Assembly (NCBI GenBank): GCA_002269645.1
Contig: NIVC01001366.1
Coordinates: 21,156-85,155 of the forward strand
Source: Macrostomum lignano
Taxonomy: Eukaryota
DNA: 64,000 bases
Direction of reading: 5' to 3'
In this document: positions 40,855-59,350 of the stretch, piece by piece
Numbering within the stretch: position 1 is the first letter of the stretch
How the letters are laid out: each line of letters starts with the position of its first letter
Position numbers and translations under genes: made by a program
Notes under the pieces: model-generated
The model's database searches: none
What the model saw: only the letters and a program-made list of their open reading frames with translations
What the model was told of the DNA's origin: nothing

Positions 40855-43800
40855 ATGGAAGGCAGCCCAGACAAGCAGATCCTCGCGGACGACGGGAAAC
40901 AGACCGCCGAGGTAGACGAACCGCTGACATTGCGGAAGTTCCCTCAGCTTTTCGTTAGTGGCTTTTGGCTCAAAAATGCAGCGAAACCAAAAGACCAAAC
41001 TAAACCAAACAAACCAAGCCTGAAATATTTCAGAAGAAATGAAGAGAGTTCACTTTTCACCTACGTCAGCGTACCAGCATACCCAATGTGCACACACCAG
41101 ACATTTACCCCTGCATGCGTTGAAATTATACCAATTTCCGTACCAAAGTAGGTGTTGGGACTCAAGTTTTAAACCAAATTTAAGGACAAATTCGTTTATA
41201 ACAAAAGCGCATTTCAATTAGACAAAGAAATTATCACAATCTTAATATTACGCTCGTATTTAGAGTAAAGAAAGAAAATTATCTGAGCATGGTCAAGGAA
41301 TAAAAAGAATTAGTTTAAATGCGTCAAATTTCCGTGAGTACCGCAAAAACGCACCGTTTTAAAAACTGCTTTGGCTTCGAACAATGGAAAGCTTGCTTTA
41401 TCTTATTTTCAGTTCGGGAGTTTCTGAGTTGTGCATGCGCGAACAGAAAGAATTGAGACTTGAAAAAAGGTTGAGTTTTTTCGAAGTTTTAATACTAATA
41501 ATTTAATTATTGATTACACCTGACCCAATGGGTAGCTGTGCAACCGACAGCTCAGCCGCAGCTATTGCGTCTATTTATTTATTATTCCATTATTCATTTA
41601 TTTATTTGAAGTTTTGTACATCCATAGCTGTAGCTCGTACAGAATTTATTTCTTTTGCGGTAAAATTTTGACCGCTAATTTGATTGTTCTATTCGCTTTT
41701 AAACATTGAACTATGCGTTGTTCGACGAATATCGTATCATGAACGAGAGTTAGCTATATCCAACATGTAATCGACAGCTTGAATCTAGCAGAATATGCGA
41801 CGATACTTGATTGAAATTCATAGGGCTCAGGGCTGTAACTTTTGCATACTAAAAATTAATTAATATACTAGATGAGATATAATTAAAACTCGCCTATATT
41901 GTCTGTTGTGTTCATCTTCTATATTTCTGTTGCCGCAATCTTTATGTTCCTTTGACTAAGGCTTATCATTTTTATCAATAAGCAGTCAAATATGCTAATA
42001 GAATTCATATGCGATTTGTTATTGAAATGGCAAACATTTTCATAAATCTATTGAAACTGTTAAAGCATCCTTCATAGCCCTGGCAATTGCTTAACTTTGC
42101 AGGAGGCTGAAACGCCACCTGACGCGGAGGCTGAAGCACAGCCTGAAGCGGAGGCTGAAGCACCACCTGAAGCGGAGGCTGAAGCATCGCCTGAAGCGGA
42201 GGCTGAAGCACCGCCTGAAGCGGAGGCTGGAGCACCGCCTGAAGCGGAGGCTGGAGCACCGCCTGAAGCGGAGGCTGAAACACCACCTGAAGCGAAGGCT
42301 GAAGCATCGCCTGAAGCGGAGGCTGAAGCCCCGCCTGAAGCGGAGGCTGGAGCACCGCCTGAAGCGGAGGCTGAAACACCACCTGAAGTGGAGGCTGAAG
42401 CCCCGCCTGAAGCGGAGGCTGGAGCACCGCCTGAAGCGGAGGCTGAAACACCACCTGAAGCGGAGGCTGAAGCACCACCTGAAGCGGAGGCTGGAGCACC
42501 ACCTGAAGCGGAGGCTGAAGCACCGCCTGAAGCGGAGGCTGAAGCACCACCTGAAGCGGAGGCTGAAGCACCACCTGAAGCGGAGGCTGGAGCACCACCT
42601 GAAGCGGAGGCTGGAGCACCACCTGAAGCGGAGGCTGAAGCACCGCCTGAAGCGGAGGCTGAAGCACCACCTGAAGCGGAGGCCAGCCCAGCAAGGTCGG
42701 TGTTGACTGGAGTGCTGCTGGACGTGTCGGGGTCGATGAAAGAAATCGTCAGCTCGGAGAAGGCTGCCGAGGCAGTGGGATACGTAGTTCGCGACAAGTG
42801 GATTCGCTCCATCTTCAGAGTTGCTGATCAGCTGATCGAGAAAGACGCACCGGAGGGGAGCCGCGTGTTTGCGATCGGCGTTGGAGCCAAGGATGAAGCG
42901 GAAGGCATTCCGCAGTCCCCAGCGGTCTTTGACATTCTCGCTTCGCTCGATGAAAGGAGAGCTGAAATCGAAGCCATCCGGGTGAGAATGCAGCGGGTGC
43001 GCGAACTGTGGCGGAGTTACCCCGGAAAGGTTGAAGTATTTGATGAAGCATTCTCCATACTAGAAAACGAAGGTGCGAAAGAAATCCGATTCTGGGGCAG
43101 AATGGACATCATCCACAAAGCTGTGGATCTCCACGTTGCATATCAGATTCTTGACCATCTCAAGACGGACGAAGACTTTCGGCATAAAATGGCCAAGGAA
43201 TTTCTTCCAGACGAATGTAGAAAACCTTCTAATAACGCGAGGAAAACCATAGCAGAATTTAATAGGCCTCCGAGTGTCTCAGATGAAGTGAAAAAAGCTG
43301 CTACAACAAATGCTGCGAAAGGTGTGATTGAGAAATGCAAAGTGTATTTAAAGAAGAGCCTTATTGACGAAGCCATTAAGCTTTTGGAGCAAAACGGAGC
43401 TCCCGATCTGAGTTCAGAACTCATGGAAATTGACATTGGCGAGATGGTCGACTTTGACACTGCCGCTTCAATTCTGAATCGACTTCGAAAGATTACAGAA
43501 TTTTTGGAAAAGGCTACCAACAAACTGATTCCTGAAGAATGTAAGAGACGTAAAAAATTGCAAGAATTCTCTGAGCAGAAAATTCAAAGCAATGTCAGAG
43601 AAAGAGCTGCACCAGCTCCAACATGGGCCACACTAGTGCTAATGCCAGCAGCTGCACCAGCTCCAACATTGGGCACACTAATGCAAATGCCAATAGCTGC
43701 ACCAGCTCCAACATTGGGCACACTAATGCAAATGCCAATAGCTGCAGCAGCAGTAAGAGGAGGAGTCCGTTGGATAATGCGGAAGTTAAGAGATGGAGGA

Positions 43801-45984
43801 CCGGCAGTTGAGGACATTGATTTTCACGATCTCTGCGAGTTTCATGAACACTTACGATCTTGTTCTCAGATTCCTATTACAGAAGAAGTGAAGATTTCCC
43901 TTATAAAAGAAGTGAAGACCGCGGCAACGAGTATGGCTGTACATAGAACCATTAAAGAACTCAAAAGGCTTGCGCAAAATGAATTGGATCATGAGCACAG
44001 GCAGGGACTACTTGCAGACATTGTAAAGGAAGCTATATTAATACTCGAAAAAAATGGTCCGCTAAAGCTGAGCGACAAGCTTGAAGAAATCGACTTTCAA
44101 AATTTGGTAACTCTGGATGCCGCCAAACAGATTTACAAGGCGCTCAATACCAATAATGACTTCCTGAAGAGTGTCGTGAACGAGTTCATTCCCGAGGAAT
44201 GTAAGAATCGCGACTCAGAAATGGCCAAGAGGGGATGGACCAAAGCCGAAATTGGAGCAACGGTAGGTAAAGTTGCATGCCTAGCCGGCGGTATGTTAAC
44301 CGGTGGAGTAGCAGCTGTGCCAATCGCAGTTGGAGCCGCCGCTGTTGTTCAATGTGCAGAGAAATCTACGGACAATCGTGTGAGCGAAGCCACAGAGGAG
44401 TCCGTCAGGGAAGTCGTACAGAAGTGCAGAGACTATATTAAAAAGAAATGGGAAAATCAGTTTCCACCTAAACAACTTCTTCACATGTCGCAAAAGTCCG
44501 TATTCAGTGCAAAGGAAGCCAAAACTATTCTGCGCTCCTGCGCCGATGGCGAGACGGAGCTGACGGATCAGGACATCGACGAGCTGGTGGAAGCCTTGGA
44601 GCCCTACATTTACGGAGGAACCCCGCTGATGGAGGCAATGTACAACTCGATTGATCTTTTTAAACGCCATGTCTGTAAAACACGAAAGAACGATAAACTT
44701 TTATTCGTTTTATCCGACGGCAAACATGCCGATTTAAAAAGGTTCGACCAGAAAGCTCTGTTGAAGCAACTTCAGGACGCAGAGGTCACAATTGTATCCT
44801 GCTACATTACAAAGACAGACATGCGTGAACCGCGTCGCCTCTACAGCTCGGATTGCGAGGAGTGGGAAAAAGCAGCGAAATTTATGTTCCACATGGCTTC
44901 GACAGTCTCCACCCAGAAGGTCCCCAGAACCCTGTTTACCCGAAAGGGCTGGACAATCGACACCGACAACAATGAGACCCGACTGTTCTTCCAGATCAAT
45001 CACCCCGACCTCATCGATGAGGTCTGCGACATCGCCAAGAGCTGCGTGTGCTCGCAGGACGCGCTGTCGGACGTGCTGGCCGACGTGGACCTCGACCTGT
45101 ACATCAACAGGGCCAACGAGGGCTTCGAGCCGCAGCGACAGTCGGAGCTCACCTGCTTTGCAGTCGCGTCGGCGACCGTCATGCACCTGAGCATGCTCAG
45201 GGTTGTGGGTCGGGACGGCGGATATCCGAACTTCTTCCAGCTCAGAGACGAGATCGTCGCTCAGTTCGGACAGCGCAGAGCCCGCACAGTCGAGGTGCTG
45301 CGGACAGTGTGTCCGGAGTACCGGCTGCAGTGCAAGGAGGTCGATGAGAGAGCCGCGCTGGACGCCGTCATCGCCAAGCAGCCAGTCGTGGCGAGGTTCC
45401 ACCTCACTAAGAGCGAGTGGGGCAGCTTCAAGCAGTTCTTCAAGCAGAATCCCGAAGGCATTCCCACAAAGTCGGAAATCGACATCAGCCAAAGACCCGT
45501 TGCACAGAAGACTTTCGGACACGCGGTGGTGCTGATGAGCTTCGACAGACACAGCCTGAGGCTGATGAACTCGTGGGGCTCCGGCTGGGGCGACGGCGGC
45601 TTCTTCAGAGTGCAGAGCGCAGCCGTGCTCAGGATGAAGTTCATCGATGTGTTCTGGACCGAGGAGCAGCTGACTGAGGCCGAGAGAGCCGCCTTCAAAG
45701 AGCGCGGACCGGGCGTCGCTGAAAAGCTGTTCGCCTCACTGAAGGGTCTGCAGACATGCAAGTACAGGTGCCCGCTGTGCAAAAGGGAGTCCCTGGTGTC
45801 GGAGTTCTCGGGACACACGCTGGAGGCCAGGTGTCCCAGGTGTTTGGGCAGCTTCAATGCGAACCTGGCGGGCAGCGACCTGGCGCTGAACCTGTACCTC
45901 ACCTCGCTGCTGCCCAGGAAAACTCCAGAGCAACCTACTCACAACACGCCCACAGGTGAACAGGAAAACCGTGAGCTTAAGTGA
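40855..45984 (+). CDS. ~1310-aa protein: (PPEAEAEA)n acidic spacer, split VWA domain with a large helical-repeat insertion, papain-like (C1/CA clan) cysteine protease and CxxC...CxxC Zn ribbon
   Basis: Predicted exon 1 40855-40911 (MEGSPDKQILADDGKQTAE|GTAGAC) is spliced in phase 0 to exon 2 42103-45984 (acceptor taactttgcag). MIDAS DVSGS at 42721, GGTPL at 44614 and LSDG at 44710. Protease Q/C at 45139/45154, GHAVV at 45517 and MNSWG at 45565. Confidence 0.8.
42103..42684 (+). repeat. Coding 24-bp repeat (PPEAEA(E/G)A) x~24
   Basis: Unit ccacctgaagcggaggctgaagca, in frame with the downstream VWA motif. Confidence 0.85.
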
Positions 45985-47480: not shown

Positions 47481-48071
47481 TACTAGTTTACTAATTTACT
47501 AGTATTTTACGAAATACAAAACAGGCTCACAGCAGCTGTACATTGAGTATTTTATAATCTCCTGAACTCAAAATCGGCCGCATGATCTTCGACCGAAGAC
47601 ACAAATTTGTTGGTGCTTGAGTAATATTTCACAGAAATTCAAAAAAGCAGGATTTCGGATCAGCCACACGAATGAATTATGAAATATGAGTCGGATAAAT
47701 TAAAAAAAATGTTTTATAAAAGCAAGTCAAGGACTACTAGACGAAGTGGTCCTTGAAGCAAGTACTCGTATTGAAGTTAGTCGTCCTTTTATTTTGTCAC
47801 CTCAAAAGAATGGCAAACCCCACAATTATAAGCCAAATACAATTTCCGACAATAAAGGGTTTCTTGCTTCCAATAATTCCAGTTTTCTTTAGCTGTCAAT
47901 CTGGTAAGTTATCAAAACTATCGGAATAATGAGTGATTCACTTATAACTTCAATGAGAGCTAGCCTACAGCTGAACAGACTGGACTGCTAATGCAGCGAC
48001 CTGGGTTCGAATCTTAGTAGTGTATATAAAGTGTATAAAAGTAGTGAAATTTTCTTTTTATGCGCTTAATA

Positions 48072-49272
48072 AACCAAGGATTTCTGCACTTGATAAACCA
48101 AGGATTACTGCACTTGATAAACCAAGGATTTCTGCACTTGATAAGCCAAGGATTACTGCACTTGATAAACCAAGGATTTCTGCACTTGATAAACCAAGGA
48201 TTTCTGCACTTGATAAACCAAGGATTTCTGCACTTGATAAACCAAGGATTTCTGCACTTGATAAACCAAGGATTACTGCACTTGATAAACCAAGGATTAC
48301 TGCACTTGATAAACCAAGGATTTCTGCACTTGATAAACCAAGGATTTCTGCACTTGATAAACCAAGGATTACTGCACTTGATAAACCAAGGATTTCTGCA
48401 CTTGATAAACCAAGGATTACTGCACTTGATAAACAAAGGATTACTGCACTTGATAAGCCAATGATTACTGCACTTGATAAACCAAGACTTACTGCACTTG
48501 ATAAACCAAGGATTTCTGCACTTGATAAACCAAGGATTACTGCACTTGATAAACCAAGGATTATTGCACTTGATAAACCAATGATTACTGCACTTGATAA
48601 ACCAAGGATTATTGCACTTGATAAACCAATGATTACTGCACTTGATAAACCAAGGATTATTGCACTTGATAAACCAAGGATTTCTGCACTTGATAAACCA
48701 AGGATTTCTGCACTTGATAAACCAAGGATTACTGTACTTGATAAACCAAGACTTTCTGCACTTGATATACCAAGGATTACTGCACGGATTACTGCACTTT
48801 ATAAGCCAAGGATTACTGCATTTTATATACCAAGGATTTCTGCACGGATTTCTGCACTTGATATACCAAGGATTACTGCACGGATTTCTGCACTTGATAA
48901 ACCAAGGATTTCTGCAATTGATAAACCAAGGATTTCTGCACTTGATAAACCAAGGATTTCTGCACTTGATAAACCAAGGATTTCTGCACTTGATAAACCA
49001 AGGATTTCTGCACTTGATAAACAAAGGATTACTGCACGGATTACTGCACTTGATAAACCAAGGATTTCTGCACTTGATAAACAAAGGATTACTGCACGGA
49101 TTACTGCACTTGATAAGCCAAGGATTTCTGCACTTGATAAACCAAGGATTTCTGCACTTGATAAACAAAGGCTTACTGCACGGATTACTGCACTTGATAA
49201 ACCAAGGATTACTCCACTTGATAAGCCAAGGATTACTGTACTTGATAAACCAAGGATTTCTGCACTTGATAA
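48072..49272. repeat. 24-bp minisatellite (with 12-bp sub-units)
   Basis: Unit tgcacttgataaaccaaggatttc, about 50 copies. Confidence 0.9.
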
Positions 49273-52109
49273 GCTTGGCTACATGTATGGGATTCTTTCT
49301 ATCCAGGGATGCTTGCTATTTAGGGATTCTTGCTATCTGCAGGATGCTTGCTATCTGGGTGGATGCTTCAACATAACTGGGGGATGCTTGCTATAGTTTC
49401 AAAGTTGCTTACTTTTGGAGGAGGGTGCTTGCTATCTGGAGGGATGCTTGCTGTCTTGGGAATATTTTCTATTTAGGGGGAATGTCTGTTATCTTTGTGA
49501 AAGCTATATTTTGTTGTCTGTTTGTTAATTTAAAAAAAAGATATTCATAGCAAATATCATTGTCCGTGTCAATTTTACATGAACAAGGTGATTTCTAAAA
49601 GTGAAGAAGGAATTGGTGTTTAAGAAAATGTGCTTTTTAATTTTTTCTATGAACTTTTTTTGCTCCTTGCTTATAGGGCGCCCCGAAAGGGGGTCCGCAC
49701 TAGATTGTTAGTGAGTGACTGAATTTATAATTTTGCTTCATCAAATCGATTGATGAATTACATGTAGGTGATTGATTAGGAACTGGAAGTTGCCACGCAT
49801 CATTGTGGTGGTTTCCGCTAAGGACCACTAGAAGTTACCGATGTATATGTATCATGAAGTTACCGAAGTTGAAGTTGGTAACTTCTTAAGTAGTCCTTGG
49901 CTTCCAATGTTGTTTTAACTCTTTTATCCAATCAAGAATTGCCATGAATAGGAGGTTGTGTCGTATAGCTATTTTAATAAAATGATTTATAACTATCAGT
50001 ATTTTGCTTTCCCTCCCCTCTACATGTATAACCCGAATCTTCCTAGCTTAGCCCTTACGTGCGAGCTAAAGGCGAGGTCAAAATTTCGACTACTTCTAGT
50101 CAAGGACATTGCTACACTAGTCTAGTCTAGTCTAGCACTATACTTCAAAGTCAACCTCAAAAGCTGCACATTCATCACCCCAAACTAAGCAATCGAAACT
50201 GCAATTCTTAAATGACCTGACCTGTGAAACGTACGGGACTCATGCAAATGTCTACAAAATTCCGTCAGCCACCTCTACGATTTTAAGTAATATCTCTTTA
50301 AATACACATTTTAGATCTAAATTCACCTTATGATAATATGATAAGACGCATCATATTAGTCTTAACGAAGCCGAGATTTTCAAAGGCTTAGTCAAAATGC
50401 GATCCATAGTTTGCCTTCAGATAGAAACGCAGCGTCCTCAGTCCTCGATAGAAATTAATAGCGAGGGATGAGGAGGAAAATCGTTCAAACTGCAGCAGCA
50501 GGAATCTCGCTTGCTGCCACAGAATTAAGCGAATATACGTGCTGCATTGGTGGGTGCAGCCCACTGTATTTTATTGTCACTAAATAATCTTCACTCGAAT
50601 AAGGTCGTAAAACCGTACGAAGCAAATCAAAAATTGCAACAATTGATGAAAGCTCAATGAGAAAGAATCGCAAACGGCCGAGTTTGCGTTTTTGAATCAC
50701 ATTCTGATCGTTTTACTCTGCGCGCAAATGATGTTTTGCCATAAGCAATCCTGTACTATTGAGCGTGCAGAGCTGTCAAGTAAAACGAAAATGCTGCTTT
50801 TGTGTGTTCTGGGTGCTATTTTGTCTTTTGTGCTTTTTAGCTCATGAATTGTCGAATTTCCTATTTTTCCAAGTTTTCATTTTTATAATCTTGAAGTTTT
50901 CCAGAGAAGGACTGCAGATTTTGCTATTAAGTGCAAATAACATTGATCGCAATGTCACTTCACGGTAATGACCTCTGATTAATGGACGGTCATTATGGGT
51001 AAGAAAATTCAATCAATTCTTAACCTTCCATTTGTACTTCGTTATAATCAACGCATCACTGATTTCATTTCAAGTCATCGTAGATCTCTCTCTCTCTGGA
51101 TTAGTTACGTACAAGAGTGACCTGCTTCACACCTTTGCTACGCTAAATGAATTAAAAACTTAACCACACGCTGCTACCTGACTGTTACCTGCCCATTCAG
51201 GTTAGTTGTGTGCGGTAAGGCTGCAGGAATATTTTTAGTAGCTACGAGCTGGCACAATCCACCGAGAAAGTTTATTCTCAGAGCCTCTGGGTGTGCTTCT
51301 ATTTAGTTTGCTAAGTACGAGCGACAAGCGTACAATGTGAAAGCGAAGTTCTCTTTTTAATTTACATTTAGAAACCCACATTCGTACAATAGAACCTCAG
51401 AATTCTGTCATTGCGCCTGTTTTGTGTACGAGCCGTAGTTTGCTTCCATTTTCACTTACCTACCCGATAGTTGCACTCAGCGGCTCTCCAGATCTGTCTT
51501 ATCAGAGACGCCGTCGTGTGATGCCAGGGTTGCATGCCAGATGTAGTGGCTTTCGTAAGTGAGTGTAAAGTTTTAGGCATTTTATACAGACAAGACTGAC
51601 ACACGTGACTAGAAATGAACTAAATTACAGCTGAGATCATAAACTTTGAAAAAAATAAAGCAGACAAATGAGCAAATCTGAGTTAGCTACAGAGCTACCG
51701 CAAAATTTAAAAGATTTGGCTGAAATATATGTAAGCTCATAGCTAGAAAAGCCAGGAGAATGAAAGCAAAAACGAACATTAGCTTTGATTACAACGGTTT
51801 TAATATTACTTTTAATATTTAGAATACATTAATATACTCGATTTTCTGGTTGTGAGTACCCCAAGTCTGACCCGAACAGACCTTAGTACTCGTACGAGTA
51901 TGCGTGGGCAAGCTGAATAAATGACCGGATAAGCTATAGATTAACTAAGTTACATTAAGGATTAACTAAGTCACACTACTATAAGTTAAGCTTTGTAGAA
52001 AAATGTATCAAAGTACAATAAGCATTGTTTTCTGCAACTAAGCTGGCCACACTGGCGACAGAAGTTCAGAATCTTTCACTTTATTAAGCCATTGTTGTAG
52101 CCGGCTCAA

Positions 52110-53366
52110 TCATTTGTCTTTGCCTTCCTCGTCGTTTTCGGAGTCGCAGTCGCAGTCGCAGACGCTCAGAATTTGAACCAAAAGTGCATCGAAGAATGCT
52201 TTCTTAGTCGCGTCATCGAGCGGAACCGGAGCACCATTGATCTCGTCAGTCACGACGTCTCCCATCGGGATGTGCTGCCCAACTTTCTTGCAGTTGCCGC
52301 AACGCGCCACGGCACGAAACTGTTGGCCGTCATACTCGATGGTGATCATTCTGCAGGGAGCAGCACGCGGGTTGCCCCGGGCTTTGTGGAATTCATGCAG
52401 CGCGTGCTGCTCCGCGCAGCTCGGCTCACCTCCAGCCGAACCGCGGACTTTAGGCGCTCCGTTCGGGAACTTTTCGTTCAGCATCCGCTGTGTGGTTGCT
52501 TCCTCCCCTTGGAAGGGATCCAGGCGCTGTGCCTTCCGAAGGCGGAAGGAATAGCCGGTGTATGCGGTACCTTCCACATCGATTACCATGGCGCACTTGG
52601 TTCCTTTGAGGCCTTCGGGGCCAGATTTTACAGCTTCCTTCATCTGTAGAGCGACATGCTGGATTTCTCGGACAATGACATCTACCGATTCTGCGCCCGC
52701 CAGTTCGAGTTTTCCCTGGCGAACTGCCTCGACGATTTCACTCTTCATCTGTGCGTACGCAGCTCTTTTCGCTGTGAAATTCTCTACGGCCTTTGCACCG
52801 CGGTAACCTGCCACACCATCAAAAACAAACGTCACCACCCAGTCGAAGCCTTCTCCAGCTGACATTTTATTGTTGCGGAGTTGGTCTACTGCATGAAAGT
52901 GTCCGTACAGCCGCTTTTCGTCATGAAGAGCCGAATCAACTGCAGATATGATCCCATCCATTGCTGCTCCCCCAGCAACTCCTCCGGCAGCGGCTCCCGC
53001 GGGACCACAGGCAGCACAGCCAGCAATCCCACCTCCGAGAACGCCCACTGAACGCGAGGCCGCCTTCATGGCTTTGTCACCGCCCTCTCTGTCACCGAAT
53101 GCGTAATGGCCGGCACCTTTCACGTGGCCGAGAACTGGAACTGCATCGGCAAAGTCGGAAACTCCATGAATAAAGTAGAGTTGGGACTCTTTAGCAAATT
53201 CAGAATTACCGCTAGCAAGAGCGACAGTTGCCACAACCTGCGATACAACAGGGCAACCCTTGACAAAGTTTTTTTGTGTTTGCTTGGCACCTTCGGTGTC
53301 GCCAGCAATCAGCTGGACCGCACTTTTTGTTTGGGAGATTACCGGCAGGCTGTCTGTATTTCCCAT
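52110..53366 (-). CDS. 418-aa polymorphic-toxin-like protein with a C-terminal zinc-dependent nucleic-acid deaminase-fold domain (YwqJ-like)
   Basis: Intronless ORF. MGNTDS myristoylation motif; three PV(I/V/L)(S/G)(Q/H)...G(D/N)xE repeats; glycine zipper at aa 107-138; C317-A-E319 and C356-G-N-C359 followed by MGDVVTD. A 5'-UTR GT-AG intron is predicted at 53517-53420. Confidence 0.75.
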   Translation of the reverse strand: MGNTDSLPVISQTKSAVQLIAGDTEGAKQTQKNFVKGCPVVSQVVATVALASGNSEFAKESQLYFIHGVSDFADAVPVLGHVKGAGHYAFGDREGGDKAMKAASRSVGVLGGGIAGCAACGPAGAAAGGVAGGAAMDGIISAVDSALHDEKRLYGHFHAVDQLRNNKMSAGEGFDWVVTFVFDGVAGYRGAKAVENFTAKRAAYAQMKSEIVEAVRQGKLELAGAESVDVIVREIQHVALQMKEAVKSGPEGLKGTKCAMVIDVEGTAYTGYSFRLRKAQRLDPFQGEEATTQRMLNEKFPNGAPKVRGSAGGEPSCAEQHALHEFHKARGNPRAAPCRMITIEYDGQQFRAVARCGNCKKVGQHIPMGDVVTDEINGAPVPLDDATKKAFFDALLVQILSVCDCDCDSENDEEGKDK

Positions 53367-54282
53367 TGTTACTCTTTATACGTTTGCCGGCTTCATCAGT
53401 GATAGCAATTTAAATCCGTCTGGAAAATGGGGAGGTTTTTAGTAGAAGGCGCAACTTTTTAGTACAGCTCAAATTATGTTTCAATTAAAAATTATCTTAA
53501 AATGGATAAAATCTTACCTTGCTCTAAGAAATTCTGATTCAGATTATGGAGGGTGAGGACGGCTGTCTACATCTTTGAGTTAGTCTATATAAGAGACGCT
53601 TTGCTGTAAAATCCTGCCACTATTATGCACGGACTGCTATTTTCTTTGTACCGTAAGCGGCAGCCACCTCGCCTTTGCTACTTGAAAAAAATTCGAGGCT
53701 CGTGCTGTGTATGTACGTATTAGCTCCATTGCGATTCTCAGCATCTTTTGAGCATGGATATTAGCCACTCTCATACTACTCATAGCACGGATGACGAAAG
53801 TGAAAAAGCGCAGTACAGAGGCCGTCTACTCGTGTACATGTAGATCCCAGCTTTTCAGCAAGACACCAAAAGTACCAAAGCTTAGACAGTAGCAGACTAG
53901 TTTGTTTTTTGTAGCTTATTTTGTACGATTACTTGCCTATGAACCACAAAGTCACAAACTTTATTCATTCATAGCTTGCTGATTGTCAGGCATCGGAGCA
54001 CATTCGGTACAATGACAACTAGGAACACTTCGTTATAAAGTCTAGTAGTCTAGACTCTAGACCCTTGATTCGGTGATGCAGATTTCTACATTTGCGACAG
54101 TGAGTAGGCAGCCCAGCCCTCTCGTGACTTAGCAATTTCAACCAATGCTCTCCTTCTGGTAATTTTTATACTATTGTTAGTAGCCTGGCCTTCACCATTC
54201 GCTTGGTCTACGACTAAGGACCGCTAAAATTTATCTGCGTGACAACCGACTGACAACAACTTGTGTCAGCCCCGGCTGTGCT

Positions 54283-54492
54283 GTCTCGGGGCTGTGCTGT
54301 CTCGGGGCTGTGCTGTCTCGGGGCTGTGCTGTCAGTCGGGACTGTGCTGTCAGTCGGGACTGTGCTGTCAGTCGGGACTGTGCTGTCAGTCGGGACTGTG
54401 CTGTCAGTCGGGACTGTGCTGTCAGTCGGGACTGTGCTGTCAGTCGGGACTGTGCTGTCATTCGGGACTGTGCTGTCAGTCGGGACTGTGCT
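54283..54492. repeat. 18-bp minisatellite
   Basis: Unit ctgtgctgtcagtcggga, about 10 copies plus shorter variants. Confidence 0.85.
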
Positions 54493-57196
54493 GGCTATAG
54501 CGATATCAATACATGTAGTTAGGAATTTCCACATTGGAATTGAGTACAGGCACCATTTTTACTTCAGAACCACCGGGAAACTGTAGCAACCAAGAATTCG
54601 CTGAGTTAATGCTAGTTGAGTAGTGGCTGCATCGCTCATACAGCAGACCGATGTCACTCGATGAAGCCATGGATCTCAGCCGCGGTCTCGCTGTCCCCGA
54701 GCAGCCAGGGTGATGGATTGATGGAACAGTGTTCTCGAGCTTGCGGAGGCTTGAGAGTCCCTAGCGGCGGTCAGGCCTGAGACAGAGAGAAAAGTATCAG
54801 TTTCAGTTGGTCATCGGTCATGCACTGCTTACCTGCCCAAGCACTGGTATTGGTGAACGGATCCAGCCGAAATCTCATGAATTTGAAGTGCCTTAAGATC
54901 CGTGCTGCAAGTAAATTACCCACCCAATTCAGCTCCTACCAGCTGCCACTATTCGACCGGCTCTACCAGAGTCAAATGCTTCAAAGCAATAATCACGGCA
55001 GTAGAACCCAAGCGTATTCAAGTTAATGGGGAAGATGCCTGCTGCTAAAGCGGCCTGATTTTTAGGGCTCAAGTCCCGGACAAGCGAGCAAACCCCCCCC
55101 CCCCCGAATGATCAGCCAAATACTTTGACTGTCTGCCCGCCGCGGCCGGCCGATCTCCAGCCAGATATTGAAAATAGATGGCCGGAGAATTTGATTTCCC
55201 AAGAGGCGGGGGAAGAGGTCAGATTGGGATCTCTGGCTGCAGCCGGGTTTCCCTTCGCGCGGATGCGGAGATGCCAGCTCAATCGGAGCTGCATTTTATT
55301 TTTATTCACCTGCCAATAAGGCGAACGGTTTCTCTTCCCAGATAGCTTGGCGAGACGCGGCTCTCCTGCTGCACTTCAAGCTGTCTCGGGCATTCGCGGG
55401 ATTCCTGACGGCGGATTCCAGCTGAGTGCCAGCAGCAGCGGTCATCTGTTTTGAGTTGAATCTGCTTTTAGAGGAAGAAAAGCTTTTAAGTCTTCTGTTG
55501 CTTGGCGGACTGCTGCTTGCGAAGGCATTTCAGTTCAGGCATTTTTTTCCGGCACAGGTAGCGGTGCTGGACTGTGCGCGCTTCCCCGCTACCTGAGGAA
55601 ATGCAAAAATCCGAAATCGCTGCTCTCTAGACTTGCCCGGGTAGTGGGGTTTGCAGCTGAGCACAAATTATTTGTTGTATTGATTAAATTCACAAATCCA
55701 ACCCAAGGCCAATCTGACTCCTTGGGGAATTTCAAGGATTTGGCTGGGAGCTGCACATCTCGAAATCTTCTTCAAAAACGTTGGTTGCAGAACGTTTTGC
55801 ACTTTTAACCTTCTGGACGCCTTCCAGATCGACCAGTTTCCGGGCCGGCTGGCTCGTTAGCTGGCATTCTGCGACTCTTGGAGCTTAAGAGGAGGTTAAA
55901 AATTAAAGCTTGGGAGACGGGTAGAGTGACAATGAGTGCGATGGAGTGACAATATTTGCAAGATTGAGTGAGGCGGATTGAGGCAGAGTGATGCAGGACG
56001 CTGAGAGACGGTGGCCGGGAGCCCAGCTGGTCGGACAGCTAATAACCAGCAAGTGGAGACTGCAGAAGCGCCCGCGCCGGGCCGCCGCTGCCCCGGTCAA
56101 ACAGGGCCGCCGCCAAGAGTGGAAGGCAAACACGAGAAGGCAAAACGAAATCAGAGGCAGCGGGGTTTGCTGCGTGCGCACTTTGCCCCTCAGCCAGTCT
56201 TAAACAGTCCATGCCCAGGCCACGCACAGCTTCAGGAGATCCTCTTGGCAACTCAGCTGAGCCGCTACTTTCAACTTTGCCGTGTCGCCTGCACTGCGGT
56301 CGATTTGCGCAATTCTGCACCGGCTTGAGGCCCTGGGCGGCTGCAGTTTTCTTAGAAAACACTCACTTTCTCCGGCCAGCTCTGCTTCTGCATCGCGAAA
56401 GTTGAAAGTTGCGCTTCCGGGTGGTCGCTAACTGCTTCCCAGTTCTCCGGTTTCGCCCATTTGCCTCCATCCTCCACACCGTAGGGAGAAGGCGGACTCA
56501 GCTGCCTGAGCCCTCGGACTTGCCGGAGACCTGCAAGCAGTCTCGCCAATAAAAAGATCGGAGCAGATCGGGCCGCCCCCCCCCCCAGCTCCCCACTCCA
56601 GCACGCCGCTGCTGCGCTCCTCCAGAAATTGACTAACAATTGTTTGCACTGGCGGCAATAGAGCGAGGCCCGCTGTGGGCTGCCAAGAGGCTCCGCAGAC
56701 AGCCGGTTCTCACAGCCCCTGTTGCTCTGCACTCTCAGTGACTTGCTGGGGTCAAACAGGAATTGATTCCCAGCCTGCCCCGGTCTGACTTCTTAACCGG
56801 CTACAGGGGTTGGGGGACTGCCTGGCAAGTGCCAACTGTCAGCAAGTCCAGAGCGCCAATGCAAGTGTTGCCAGCCGCTCGCCTGTTCAGTCACAGCCCG
56901 CCCCGCCCCATTGGAGTTGATGGCATTGAAATGCGCCATTGAGCTGGGCAAGTTTATGGCATCCCGCCAGACGAGCAGCTGACGCCAGCGCCGTCTCACC
57001 AGCTGGCCGCGAGAGGGCTGGGATCGGCAGCGCAACCGCCACCGCGGCTGATTGGCCAACGGTCTGCCAGCCAATCGGAGTCGTCTGTGGCCGGCCGAAA
57101 GAATTTCCTTAGCAAAGACGAGAACAACGAAGAAGCAAGCAAAGAAGACAAGTAGCAACAGAAAAGACGAAAAGACGGCGCCGGCGGCCACGAGAA

Positions 57197-59350
57197 ATGC
57201 CGGATCTGACAAAGCCAGGCCGTCGAGAGCTGCTGCTCAGCCGGCTGCGGCAGCTGCTTGGCAGCTCCACAGCTCACGGTGTGAACAAGCTGGTGCAGCA
57301 GGACACCAACTGGACGGTGCGCGTGATCTGGTTCACGATCTTTGTGAGCGCCGTCTGCGGGGTGACGCTGCACACGGCCACCGTCATTCGCCTGTACTTC
57401 AGCTACCCCGTCAGCTCCACGGTGCGCCAGGAGGTCAACGGATTCGAGTTCCCGGACGTCACCATCTGCGACACCATGCTGAAGAAGTTCTTCCTGTACA
57501 ATGTGTCCCACTATGACCGGCGCACCGAGGACCGCGCCTTCAGCCGCTTCTCCCAGGTGGTGCAGACGATGTTGGGCTACCAGTTCGGCTGGGAGTCCAA
57601 GAAGTTCCTGAAGGCCACCTACACGGCCTCCGGCCACATGTTCAACATGTCTGAGGTCAGCGCCAGGGCACAGGACTTTGTGCTGTACTGCGAGTTCGAC
57701 CAGAAGCCGTGCAGTCACAAAGACTTCGTCCTGTACTACGACAAAGAGTACGGCAACTGCTACACCTTCCAGCCGGCGTCCAGGCAGCTGGAGAAGGCGG
57801 GAGCAGAGATGGGTCTCATCATGGTACTGTACCCGCCCTCAGTCGATGCGAACTTCGAGGAGGACCGCATCATGAAGACGGCCACAGGCCTGGAGAGCAA
57901 AGGCTTCCAGGTGACGGTTCATCAGCGCAACACGCGGCCGGACCCGCACGAGTTCGGCATCACCGCCCCGGTCGGCATGCGCACCGACTTCGCGCTGTCG
58001 CAGGCGAAGATCCGCCTGGCCAACACGAACACGCGGCCCTGCGCCCCGGCCGGCGTGCGCCGCTTCTGGAACCCCTTCCTCCGCCTCCACCAGGAGTACG
58101 AGGACCGCCTCTACAGCTGCGTGGAGAATGAGGACGCGCTGAGCCTGCTCAGAACCTGCCGCTGCACCATCGAAGGCCTGATACCAGCGGAGGAAAAACG
58201 CCTGCTGCAGGCGGATTACTGCCACGACATCCTCGACATGCGGAACTTCAACAGCAGCCGCTTTGCCAGAGTCTCCAACCTGGTGCTCAACATGTGGCGC
58301 ATCTTCTCCGAGGAGCGCAAGAGGAAGTACGCAGCCCTCATCGTCAAGGTGATCGGCGCCAAGATCATCGAGAAGTTTCCCGATCTCGGCGAGCGGCTCA
58401 ACCGGGCTGAGTGCGCTTACAACTTCTCGCAGAAGCAGAGCCTCTCTCTGTGCCTGAACGAGTGCCAGTACAGCGAGTACTCGTCCGCCATTGCGCTGGC
58501 CGAATGGCCGGACCGAACTTTCGCCAGCCGAGGCAGCCTCATCCGCATCAAGAAGCTGGGCAGCATGCTCGCCGACTACATCTCTGTGGTGGCGAACCTG
58601 ACGCCGCCTGCAGCTCTGGTCACTTCGCTGGGCATCTCCAATCGAAACGTGTCTAGCTGCCGGGAGGACATCCACCCCAACTACGACCCCGCGGCGCTGG
58701 AGGACACTGACTGCACGGACCTGCAGCGGTTCGTCAGCAACACGCTGGTGCAGGTGAGGGTCTACCCCAAGACGCTCACCGTGCGCCTGCTGATTGAGGA
58801 GCGGAGCTACGAGCTCGAGAAGCTCTTCTCAGACATTGGCGGCATCCTCGGCCTGTGGGTCGGCATCAGCGTCATCACCATCTTCGAGCTGGCGGAGATC
58901 GCAGTGCTGTCTGCTGCCTTCCTCTACAACCTTATCAACAAGCCCGGCGGCGCCAGCGGCCAGCAGCAGCCGCCAAACTCGTCACCCACTCGCCGGGTCG
59001 ATGAGGCACTCGAGGCTTCAGAACCGCCTCAGCGGCTGCTGCAGCGGCGAAGGCAGCGGCTTGACCCGCGAGATCAGGCCGAGTCACCGCCGCTGCTGCC
59101 ACATCAAAATGGCAGCCTTCTTCGGCATCAGCAGCAGCAGCAGCAACAGCTTCAGCCACAGAAGCAACTACATCAAGAGCAAAGCCAGCAACAAGAACAA
59201 CTGCTGCCGCAGAGGCAACAAGCAGAGCAAGAACAGCAGAAGAAAAAGCAGCAGGACAGCCAAGAGCAATCGCAGCAGCAACGGCGTCACGTGATGTTGC
59301 AGCAGCGGAAGGACATCTGTTTAAACTACGATATTGAGACAACGCTGTGA
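57197..59350 (+). CDS. DEG/ENaC/ASIC-family ion channel subunit, intronless, 717 aa with a polyQ C-tail
   Basis: STAHGV (HG motif), TM1 VIWFTIFVSAVCGVTLH, FPDVTIC, YGNCYTF, Cys-rich thumb and TM2 LFSDIGGILGLWVGISVITIFEL with a G-x-S filter. Confidence 0.93.
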   Translation: MPDLTKPGRRELLLSRLRQLLGSSTAHGVNKLVQQDTNWTVRVIWFTIFVSAVCGVTLHTATVIRLYFSYPVSSTVRQEVNGFEFPDVTICDTMLKKFFLYNVSHYDRRTEDRAFSRFSQVVQTMLGYQFGWESKKFLKATYTASGHMFNMSEVSARAQDFVLYCEFDQKPCSHKDFVLYYDKEYGNCYTFQPASRQLEKAGAEMGLIMVLYPPSVDANFEEDRIMKTATGLESKGFQVTVHQRNTRPDPHEFGITAPVGMRTDFALSQAKIRLANTNTRPCAPAGVRRFWNPFLRLHQEYEDRLYSCVENEDALSLLRTCRCTIEGLIPAEEKRLLQADYCHDILDMRNFNSSRFARVSNLVLNMWRIFSEERKRKYAALIVKVIGAKIIEKFPDLGERLNRAECAYNFSQKQSLSLCLNECQYSEYSSAIALAEWPDRTFASRGSLIRIKKLGSMLADYISVVANLTPPAALVTSLGISNRNVSSCREDIHPNYDPAALEDTDCTDLQRFVSNTLVQVRVYPKTLTVRLLIEERSYELEKLFSDIGGILGLWVGISVITIFELAEIAVLSAAFLYNLINKPGGASGQQQPPNSSPTRRVDEALEASEPPQRLLQRRRQRLDPRDQAESPPLLPHQNGSLLRHQQQQQQQLQPQKQLHQEQSQQQEQLLPQRQQAEQEQQKKKQQDSQEQSQQQRRHVMLQQRKDICLNYDIETTL

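Follow-up and report, generated by a model that had tools for sequence, protein, structure and literature searches.

What kind of protein is made by an animal gene that joins a module without Pfam or PDB relatives to a domain akin to the deaminases of bacterial toxins, and does such a gene belong to the animal at all? These questions are raised by a gene of the flatworm Macrostomum lignano at positions 52110..53366 of the 64,000-nt stretch of DNA analysed here (hereafter the window; contig NIVC01001366.1, positions 21,156 to 85,155), where it lies on the minus strand, as do all features of the gene given below. It is a single uninterrupted open reading frame (ORF) of 418 aa with an ATG start and a TGA stop, thus one coding exon, and NCBI record NIVC01001366.1 (85 kb; GCA_002269645.1, Macrostomum lignano Mlig_3_7) holds a protein identical to its product. 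The initial annotation of the locus, made by reading the letters alone, had described an ORF of this length with the motifs C317-A-E319 and C356-x-x-C359, and both were found at exactly these positions. The best overall explanation, to which we give a probability of about 0.72, is that the gene encodes a two-part effector-type protein, composed of an N-terminal module (N-module, aa 1-~192) and a YwqJ-related deaminase.

First, the C-terminal part is a deaminase-fold domain with a CxE/CxxC zinc site, as established by an AlphaFold2 (AF2) model, Foldseek comparison and alignments, including those made with hhalign. The domain covers aa 251-385 (52212..52616). In the AF2 model it is built from strand b1 (256-262), strand b2 (268-272), an insert of about 45 aa, a helix (318-330), strand b3 (339-345), a hairpin insert, a second helix (357-363) and strand b4 (~369-374), with a predicted local distance difference test score (pLDDT) of 80-90 over aa 250-385. 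Conservation and alignment place the putative first zinc ligand and the catalytic glutamate in C317-A-E319 (52410..52418), at the N-terminus of helix 2, and the second and third ligands in C356-G-N-C359 (52290..52301), at the N-terminus of helix 3; the codons of both motifs were confirmed by eye. C317, E319, C356 and C359 are invariant in 12 full-length homologs down to 31% identity, together with G271, R277, L296, A322, R355, G369 and D374, and they are at least 90% conserved in 100 profile matches. R355 is also at least 90% conserved across animal and bacterial members. Judging from the topology and the in-register alignment, the four residues would cluster at one zinc site. A further cysteine, C338, is not conserved and can be dismissed as a zinc ligand because it is replaced by Ser (C338S) in g2, one of two paralogs discussed below. 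The domain is preceded by a helical linker or pre-toxin region (aa 193-250, 52617..52790; last helix H228-248 in the AF2 model), which is conserved only in deaminase-bearing members. It is followed by an acidic, low-confidence C-terminal tail containing CDCDCD (aa 386-418, 52113..52211; pLDDT below 50). The CDC motif of this tail is common only to the flatworm and rotifer-type homologs, and it could be a lipidation, metal-binding or regulatory element.

The initial annotation had suggested a structural comparison of this domain with deaminase families, and the comparison came out in favour of the proposed fold. In a Foldseek search against the PDB, ranks 1-47 are all three-cysteine cytidine deaminases (CDA) or blasticidin-S deaminases (BSD), with probabilities of 0.91-1.00 and template modelling (TM) scores to the target of 0.42-0.60, mostly 0.45-0.60. 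In the best structural matches, homotetrameric CDA and BSD (1jtk, 4f3w, 2z3h), helices 2 and 3 begin with the same Cys-Glu / Cys-x-x-Cys zinc site, and the motif of the b1-b2 hairpin is similar as well. In contrast, their sequence similarity to the M. lignano domain is not significant (E ~1), and the latter differs from them by two large inserts, a truncated C-terminus and its fusion with toxin relatives. A broadened profile searched against PDB sequences retrieved only YenC2 and two cytidine deaminases (1ux0_A and 3dmo_A), weakly and with both motifs in register: C317-A-E319 is aligned with 'nCAE' of the two cytidine deaminases and with HAE of YenC2, and C356-G-N-C359 with C-G-A-C and C-x-N-C, respectively. 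YenC2 is a Tc-toxin subunit, the C-terminal cargo of which has been described as a predicted nucleic-acid deaminase. Among viral proteins, Foldseek gave nothing significant, only faint dCMP-deaminase matches.

From these neighbours one may argue that the protein is a metabolic or detoxifying deaminase of small molecules such as cytidine/deoxycytidine, dCTP, ATP or a nucleoside antibiotic, and that the membrane module only localises it. The closest solved structures are indeed deaminases of free nucleosides or of blasticidin S with the same three-cysteine site, and the b1-b2 hairpin 'D..tG..y.G.N' resembles the aligned 'dGkvy.GcN' of the cytidine deaminase chains. It also fits that the substrate of YwqJ-type enzymes is not established in the literature consulted, YenC2 itself being only a 'predicted' deaminase. 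However, the PDB holds no folded YwqJ-type structure, so that CDA and BSD are simply the nearest folds available. The nearest relatives in sequence are the C-terminal tips of RHS toxins and no housekeeping CDAs, the two large inserts and the truncated C-terminus are unlike CDAs, and the distribution is patchy, with domain swaps in which other toxin-like tails occupy the same N-module. Only the kind of enzyme represented by the nearest solved folds thus speaks for this alternative, which we consider unlikely.

Second, the domain is connected to the YwqJ-type deaminases of bacterial toxins, as had been proposed initially. The connection is transitive, because the M. lignano protein itself gives no Pfam, NCBIfam, PADLOC or PDB-sequence match. 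When a profile made from animal sequences only was compared with 1.84 billion representative proteins, 108 matches were obtained. Among them are proteins of 2886, 1322 and 4077 aa that carry DUF6443 and RHS repeats and in which the domain forms the last ~100 residues; one long RHS relative is from Sporocytophaga. In shorter fragments the RHS core-end motif YDPxxGKFLSVDP...DLDGLE is followed by the deaminase domain. The Pfam family YwqJ-deaminase (PF14431) is matched by 10 of 100 profile matches, with a best E-value of 2.3e-10. When bacterial members were scanned singly against PF14431, nine out of ten matched, two of them (P0153 with 41.2 bits and P0131 with 35.5 bits) above the gathering cutoff of 25.9 bits. 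With the broad profile, a search for homologs brought up 10 bacterial proteins only, which gave names and no taxonomic breadth; NCBI and IMG call bacterial sisters 'YwqJ-related putative deaminase'. Alignment of the animal set with the bacterial set by hhalign reached a probability of 99.2% (E=1e-19), with the reservation that the bacterial set had been recruited by the animal profile, albeit at library-wide significant E-values, and the two sets are collinear through 'D.kTGk.Y.G', 'CAE..A' and 'RC.NC'.

The signatures of the YwqJ clade are Gx[CH]xE in helix 2, a conserved His in the insert that separates strand 2 from helix 2, an insert between strand 3 and CxxC, and a C-terminus that breaks off after helix 3 or strand 4 (Iyer et al., 2011, PMC3239186). 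The last two of these features can be recognised in the flatworm domain. The strand-2/helix-2 insert is present (aa 273-316), but with R277, L296 and a proline near aa 301 as its conserved residues and no conserved His. The strand 3-CxxC insert is found at aa 346-355 (YDGQQFRAVAR), with a short strand at 350-352. The C-terminus is truncated: conservation does not extend beyond the strand M-G-x-V-x-T-D (aa 368-374), pLDDT drops sharply past aa 385, and bacterial members as well as P0034 end within a few residues of this strand. Bacterial RHS, LXG and Tc toxins carry YwqJ-like domains (PF14431) at their C-termini, and the motifs of these domains are collinear with those of the M. lignano domain. 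They differ in that the M. lignano strand-2/helix-2 insert is much longer (~45 aa), in that its deaminase is attached to a eukaryotic N-module instead of RHS, LXG or PAAR delivery domains, and in that its host is an animal. In 2011 bacteria and basidiomycetes were the only hosts reported for the clade (Iyer et al., 2011, PMC3239186). From this pattern of motifs we file the domain as a probable divergent animal clade related to YwqJ-type toxin deaminases and as no plain member of them. Literature searches and domain libraries yielded no description of an animal YwqJ-type clade and no paper on Mlig033190, the family to which the locus belongs, and the word 'YwqJ' is absent from a survey of the AID/APOBEC-like deaminases of metazoans (Krishnan et al., 2018, PMC5889660).

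The initial annotation had further held that the enzyme is neither ADAR nor APOBEC, and this agrees with what was found. AID/APOBEC-like and ADAR/ADAT enzymes are likewise animal zinc deaminases that ultimately came from bacterial toxin deaminases and for which immune roles have been proposed (Krishnan et al., 2018, PMC5889660). They belong, however, to a different structural division: the fold matches of the M. lignano domain (CDA/BSD) are of the C-terminal-hairpin type, whereas AID/APOBEC have the helix-4 topology (Iyer et al., 2011, PMC3239186). The M. lignano protein gives no Pfam match to the AID/APOBEC or ADAR/ADAT families.

Third, the N-terminal part of the protein forms a module of its own. 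An MGxxxS start, three repeats and a glycine zipper had all been noted in the letters, and each of them holds. The first seven residues, MGNTDSL (53346..53366), fit the PROSITE-type pattern for N-myristoylation, G-{EDRKHPFYW}-x2-[STAGCN]-{P}, and a myristoylation-type MGxxx[ST] start occurs in 42 of the 64 family members whose module begins at the N-terminus. Then come three helix-turn-helix repeats of about 34 aa (53046..53357), R1 at aa 4-37, R2 at aa 37-72 and R3 at aa 73-107, which are supported by shuffle scores and by the helix pairs of the AF2 model (H8-20/H24-37, H39-51/H55-75 and H77-89/H93-). The similarity is clear between R1 and R2 (z=14.4) and between R1 and R3 (z=9.4), neither value being reached in any of 2000 shuffles; R2 and R3 compared directly are only weakly similar (z=1.2) and are linked only through R1. 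Composition and alignments define the Gly/Ala zipper with an invariant central G-P at aa 105-146 (52929..53054), which is 57% G+A and contains three charged residues in 42 aa. Its G113, G116, G121, G124, G129 and D137 are invariant in the alignment of 12 homologs, and G116 and G121 also across 47 N-module proteins. The distal part (aa 147-192, 52791..52928), with G155, D175, D183 and G187, is kept in proteins with unrelated tails. A model of the N-module by itself, built with 47 sequences, is all-alpha, with a pLDDT of 89 and a predicted TM score of 0.77.

The module thus described has no match among Pfam models, and Foldseek found no significant relative in the PDB; all hits are generic TPR-like or designed helical repeats, the best of them at E=1.0. 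Kinship with the pore domains of colicins, Bcl-2 or APOL-type proteins was considered and rejected on the same search. Some relatives show faint Pfam matches to C19orf12, SseC, Microcin V and DUF456, all on the Gly-rich segment. The glycine-zipper proteins of the C19orf12 type (PF20721) are alike in having a helical segment that is rich in Gly/Ala, bears almost no charge and has a G-P at its centre. On the other hand, C19orf12 lacks the repeats and the toxin tail, and the M. lignano protein itself gives no match to the family. Homology of the zipper with C19orf12 was therefore not accepted, since only 6 of 47 members match, at E-values of 2.5e-4 or more and below threshold; the likeness is treated as a compositional analogy. 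From the acylation motif, the composition and the analogies seen in Pfam matches, we infer that the N-module may attach the protein to a membrane or insert into it. The hydrophobicity profile shows no signal peptide-like hydrophobic stretch at the N-terminus.

What, then, is the module joined to in other proteins? A search of this kind had been suggested together with the toxin hypothesis, and it revealed at least 16 unrelated tail groups besides the deaminase. The N-module is 35-64% identical among proteins with unrelated C-termini, and divergence begins after ~aa 195. Among the 71 N-module proteins with a tail of at least 90 aa, 52 carry the deaminase, in a sample biased to it since half was recruited by the deaminase profile. 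One of the other tails is a Scabin-like DNA ADP-ribosyltransferase (E=6.9e-6; 26.4 bits, just under the cutoff of 27). The hosts include sponges (Halichondria, Oscarella), rotifers (Rotaria, Didymodactylos), bivalves (Saccostrea, Sinanodonta), nematodes (Halicephalobus, Pristionchus), springtails (Orchesella, Allacma) and teleosts (Pholidichthys, Coilia), and, outside animals, a raphidophyte alga, the fungus Ambispora and possibly a fern. The joining of one N-module to many tails across eukaryotes is the pattern of polymorphic toxins. Literature searches and domain libraries gave no description of the N-module or of its polymorphic use across eukaryotes.

Some architectures of relatives were seen beside this pattern. 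The N-module stands behind a RING finger in P0030 and before zinc fingers of the ZZ/C1 type in P0044, and P0060 of Coilia grayii, which has the deaminase domain, bears the source name 'Ig-like domain-containing protein'; these three hint at regulated or receptor-linked uses. In the deaminase-domain relatives P0134 and P0149 a hydrophobic, signal-peptide-like start replaces the N-module, which suggests secreted versions of the payload in other organisms.

Bacterial polymorphic toxin systems are the obvious comparison (Zhang et al., 2012, PMC3482391). They too combine a constant N-terminal region with alternative C-terminal domains of toxin type, and the toxin domain is common to RHS toxins and the M. 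lignano protein. Sporadic entry of polymorphic-toxin domains into eukaryotes is already established. Unlike the bacterial proteins, the M. lignano protein has no secretion or trafficking domain and no RHS/haemagglutinin repeats, no adjacent immunity gene or cassette array was detected for its gene, and its constant region is eukaryotic, probably acylated and of intracellular type.

For a two-part effector, zinc binding, catalysis, membrane association, substrate and biological role may be inferred as follows. The myristoyl group and the Gly zipper of the N-module would anchor the protein to a membrane or insert into it. C317, C356 and C359 would be the zinc ligands and E319 the proton shuttle in hydrolytic deamination of a base. 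The protein would most likely be an effector of conflict or defence, or one of regulated cell killing, with a payload that damages nucleic acids or nucleotides, because the N-module joins many unrelated tails in accordance with polymorphic-toxin logic. A broader proposal is that the N-module defines a eukaryote-wide polymorphic effector system. It would consist of an acylated glycine-zipper module with more than 16 toxin-type payloads, acting as a cell-autonomous immune or cell-death effector or as an unconventionally delivered toxin, and its deaminase payload would represent a new compact clade of animal nucleic-acid deaminases outside ADAR/APOBEC. We advance this proposal tentatively, at somewhat less than even odds.

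The opposite division of labour can also be imagined, in which the N-module itself is the working part, perturbing membranes or forming pores by its zipper, and the deaminase is accessory or catalytically retired. Teneurins are a precedent for retired toxin-derived domains. Several members appear to consist of the module alone (188-219 aa), some of them on long contigs (e.g., Ambispora and Adiantum), the glycine-rich segment has a faint likeness to those of translocon and bacteriocin proteins (SseC, Microcin V), and conservation of the N-module across phyla (45-64% identity) exceeds that of the deaminase domain. Nevertheless, the short members may be truncated gene models, and the hydrophobicity is below that of a transmembrane helix. 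The four catalytic residues, R355, G271 and R277 do not vary in the 12 closest homologs, and retention of the four at 90% or more over ~100 diverged sequences argues for a working enzyme. We regard this division of labour as improbable, slightly more so than a small-molecule deaminase.

Fourth, the gene is a resident, transcribed gene of M. lignano. The initial annotation had reached the first part of this view from the intron; the argument can be made independently of it, from animal neighbours, the presence of three copies and an annotation derived from RNA-seq. The neighbours in the window are animal genes: a DEG/ENaC channel (57197-59350, 4 kb away) and exons of propionyl-CoA carboxylase, ZFYVE19-like and alpha-mannosidase genes. 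The locus family Mlig033190 has three copies, the cluster-mates being BOX15_Mlig033190g2 and g3 [Macrostomum lignano] with the proteins PAA78351.1 and PAA93763.1. Both paralogs have intact ORFs, and their loci are on NIVC01000694.1 and NIVC01000020.1, contigs of 442 kb and 1.5 Mb. In coding sequence (CDS) the two share 99.0-99.1% identity with the copy in the window, compared with a divergence of 3-4% in the flanks. The GenBank annotation of the assembly was generated from RNA-seq-based transcript assemblies, and therefore the transcript cluster 'Mlig033190' exists. Three copies of about 99% identity with 96-97% identical flanks also agree with reports that a large fraction of the M. lignano genome is duplicated.

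These facts bear on the suspicion that the sequence is bacterial contamination, or a recent horizontal transfer that was dead on arrival and gave no functional flatworm gene. Such a suspicion is raised by a coding exon without introns and by the fact that the nearest homologous domain with a known name is bacterial. Against it, animal genes flank the gene on the 85-kb contig, three diverged and intact copies are spread over contigs 85 kb, 442 kb and 1.5 Mb long, TATA, GT-AG and AATAAA signals are present, and the annotation comes from RNA-seq. Moreover, the N-module occurs only in eukaryotes among named matches, and the best homologs are animal proteins of 40-59% identity, compared with ~20% for the bacterial ones. 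Contamination and a dead transfer are thus effectively excluded.

A number of observations nevertheless weigh against the two-part effector, and they are collected here. As to the deaminase, direct scans of the protein gave only noise in Pfam (E=0.2), a spurious uS11 match in NCBIfam (E=0.03) and nothing in PADLOC; there is no match to PF14431 even at E<=10; and neither the single protein nor the animal-only profile has a meaningful match among PDB sequences. The E-values from Foldseek, at 0.017 and above, are modest owing to the use of the whole 418-aa model as the query. Two signatures of the YwqJ clade are missing: the glycine of Gx[CH]xE (the sequence is G-E-P-S-C-A-E in the flatworm and P/R-x-x-[ST]-C-A-E in the consensus of the animal clade, whereas bacterial P0153 keeps the glycine in G-S-H-S-E) and the conserved His, for which the strand-2/helix-2 insert has no counterpart. 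As to the membrane, the maximum Kyte-Doolittle window of the zipper is 1.38, under the classical transmembrane threshold of 1.6, and the AF2 model of the N-module is a compact soluble bundle. As to a toxin system, no immunity-like partner was recognised nearby, where a small immunity gene of unfamiliar type is possible, and no neighbouring paralog and no cassette array turned up in the window, at the loci of the two paralogs or within the 10 kb flanking the oyster locus. Finally, the three Mlig033190 copies differ by 7-8 nonsynonymous and 4 synonymous changes, which are too few for the ratio of the two rates (dN/dS) to demonstrate recent constraint on the copies.

The transcript signals of the gene were located mainly by direct reading of the sequence. 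A TATATAG box, the putative core promoter, is at 53585..53591. It is followed by a putative exon 1 of the 5' untranslated region (UTR) at 53518..53560, with an approximate start, which is indicated by the GT donor at its end and by paralog identity. A putative GT-AG intron of 98 nt is at 53420..53517, 5'UTR exon 2 (53 nt) at 53367..53419, and the complete CDS, defined by the ORF and the match to the GenBank protein, at 52110..53366. An AATAAA polyadenylation signal lies at 52080..52085, 25 nt beyond the stop. The stretch of 69 nt at 53518-53586 is 100% identical in the three paralogs, as is exon 2, and above the TATA box paralog identity collapses. Within 53367-53586 every substitution or indel among the paralogs falls in the putative intron, the GT and AG of which are conserved, a pattern that would agree with such a gene structure. 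In the 3'UTR, the first 43 nt are again 100% identical. For the 98-nt 5'UTR intron predicted initially, the GT-AG signals are as described, namely GT at 53517-53516, a pyrimidine tract and AG at 53421-53420 in an AT-rich stretch; the intron itself is plausible from these signals. Alternatively, the AG at 53420 could be the acceptor of a spliced leader instead of the 3' end of an intron, since trans-splicing affects 38.8% of M. lignano genes.

Other features of the window are given for completeness. At 42097-45984 on the plus strand, ~6 kb from the deaminase gene and convergent with it, there is an uninterrupted ORF of 1295 aa. PEAEAEAP repeats are found at its N-terminus, a vWA/MIDAS-like motif ('LLDVSGSM') and an internal hydrophobic segment rich in Gly/Ala are also present, and its C-terminus bears a papain-like signature (Q...C...GHAVVL...NSWGSGWGDGGF) followed by CxxC...CxxC; in Pfam it gives only a sub-threshold match to Peptidase_C1 (E=9e-4; 19.8 bits compared with a cutoff of 20.7). 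An 18-nt minisatellite, CTGTGCTGTCAGTCGGGA, is repeated 12.4 times with 97% matches at 54276-54493, ~700 nt upstream of the TATA box of the gene. Its copy number differs among the three Mlig033190 loci, and it gives rise to repetitive ORFs on both strands (54214-54586). Low-complexity ORFs with spurious-looking matches to Cornifin and HTH_37 are found on both strands at 48014-49396. GC content is uneven, being 29% at 32-36 kb and 56-64% at 24-30 kb of the window.

Toxin-derived deaminases are the origin of animal AID/APOBEC and of DddA-type base editors. A further animal clade from the YwqJ lineage would be a new candidate on both counts, and M. lignano has transgenesis and RNA interference. 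If the protein were instead a membrane-anchored nucleoside deaminase, what would be left of the finding is a metabolic enzyme in an unusual fusion. More important than the deaminase may be the N-module, which is confidently folded, has no Pfam or PDB relative and is reused with toxin-like tails in distant eukaryotes. Such reuse would mean that the logic of a constant delivery module with a swappable toxin also works inside eukaryotic genomes.

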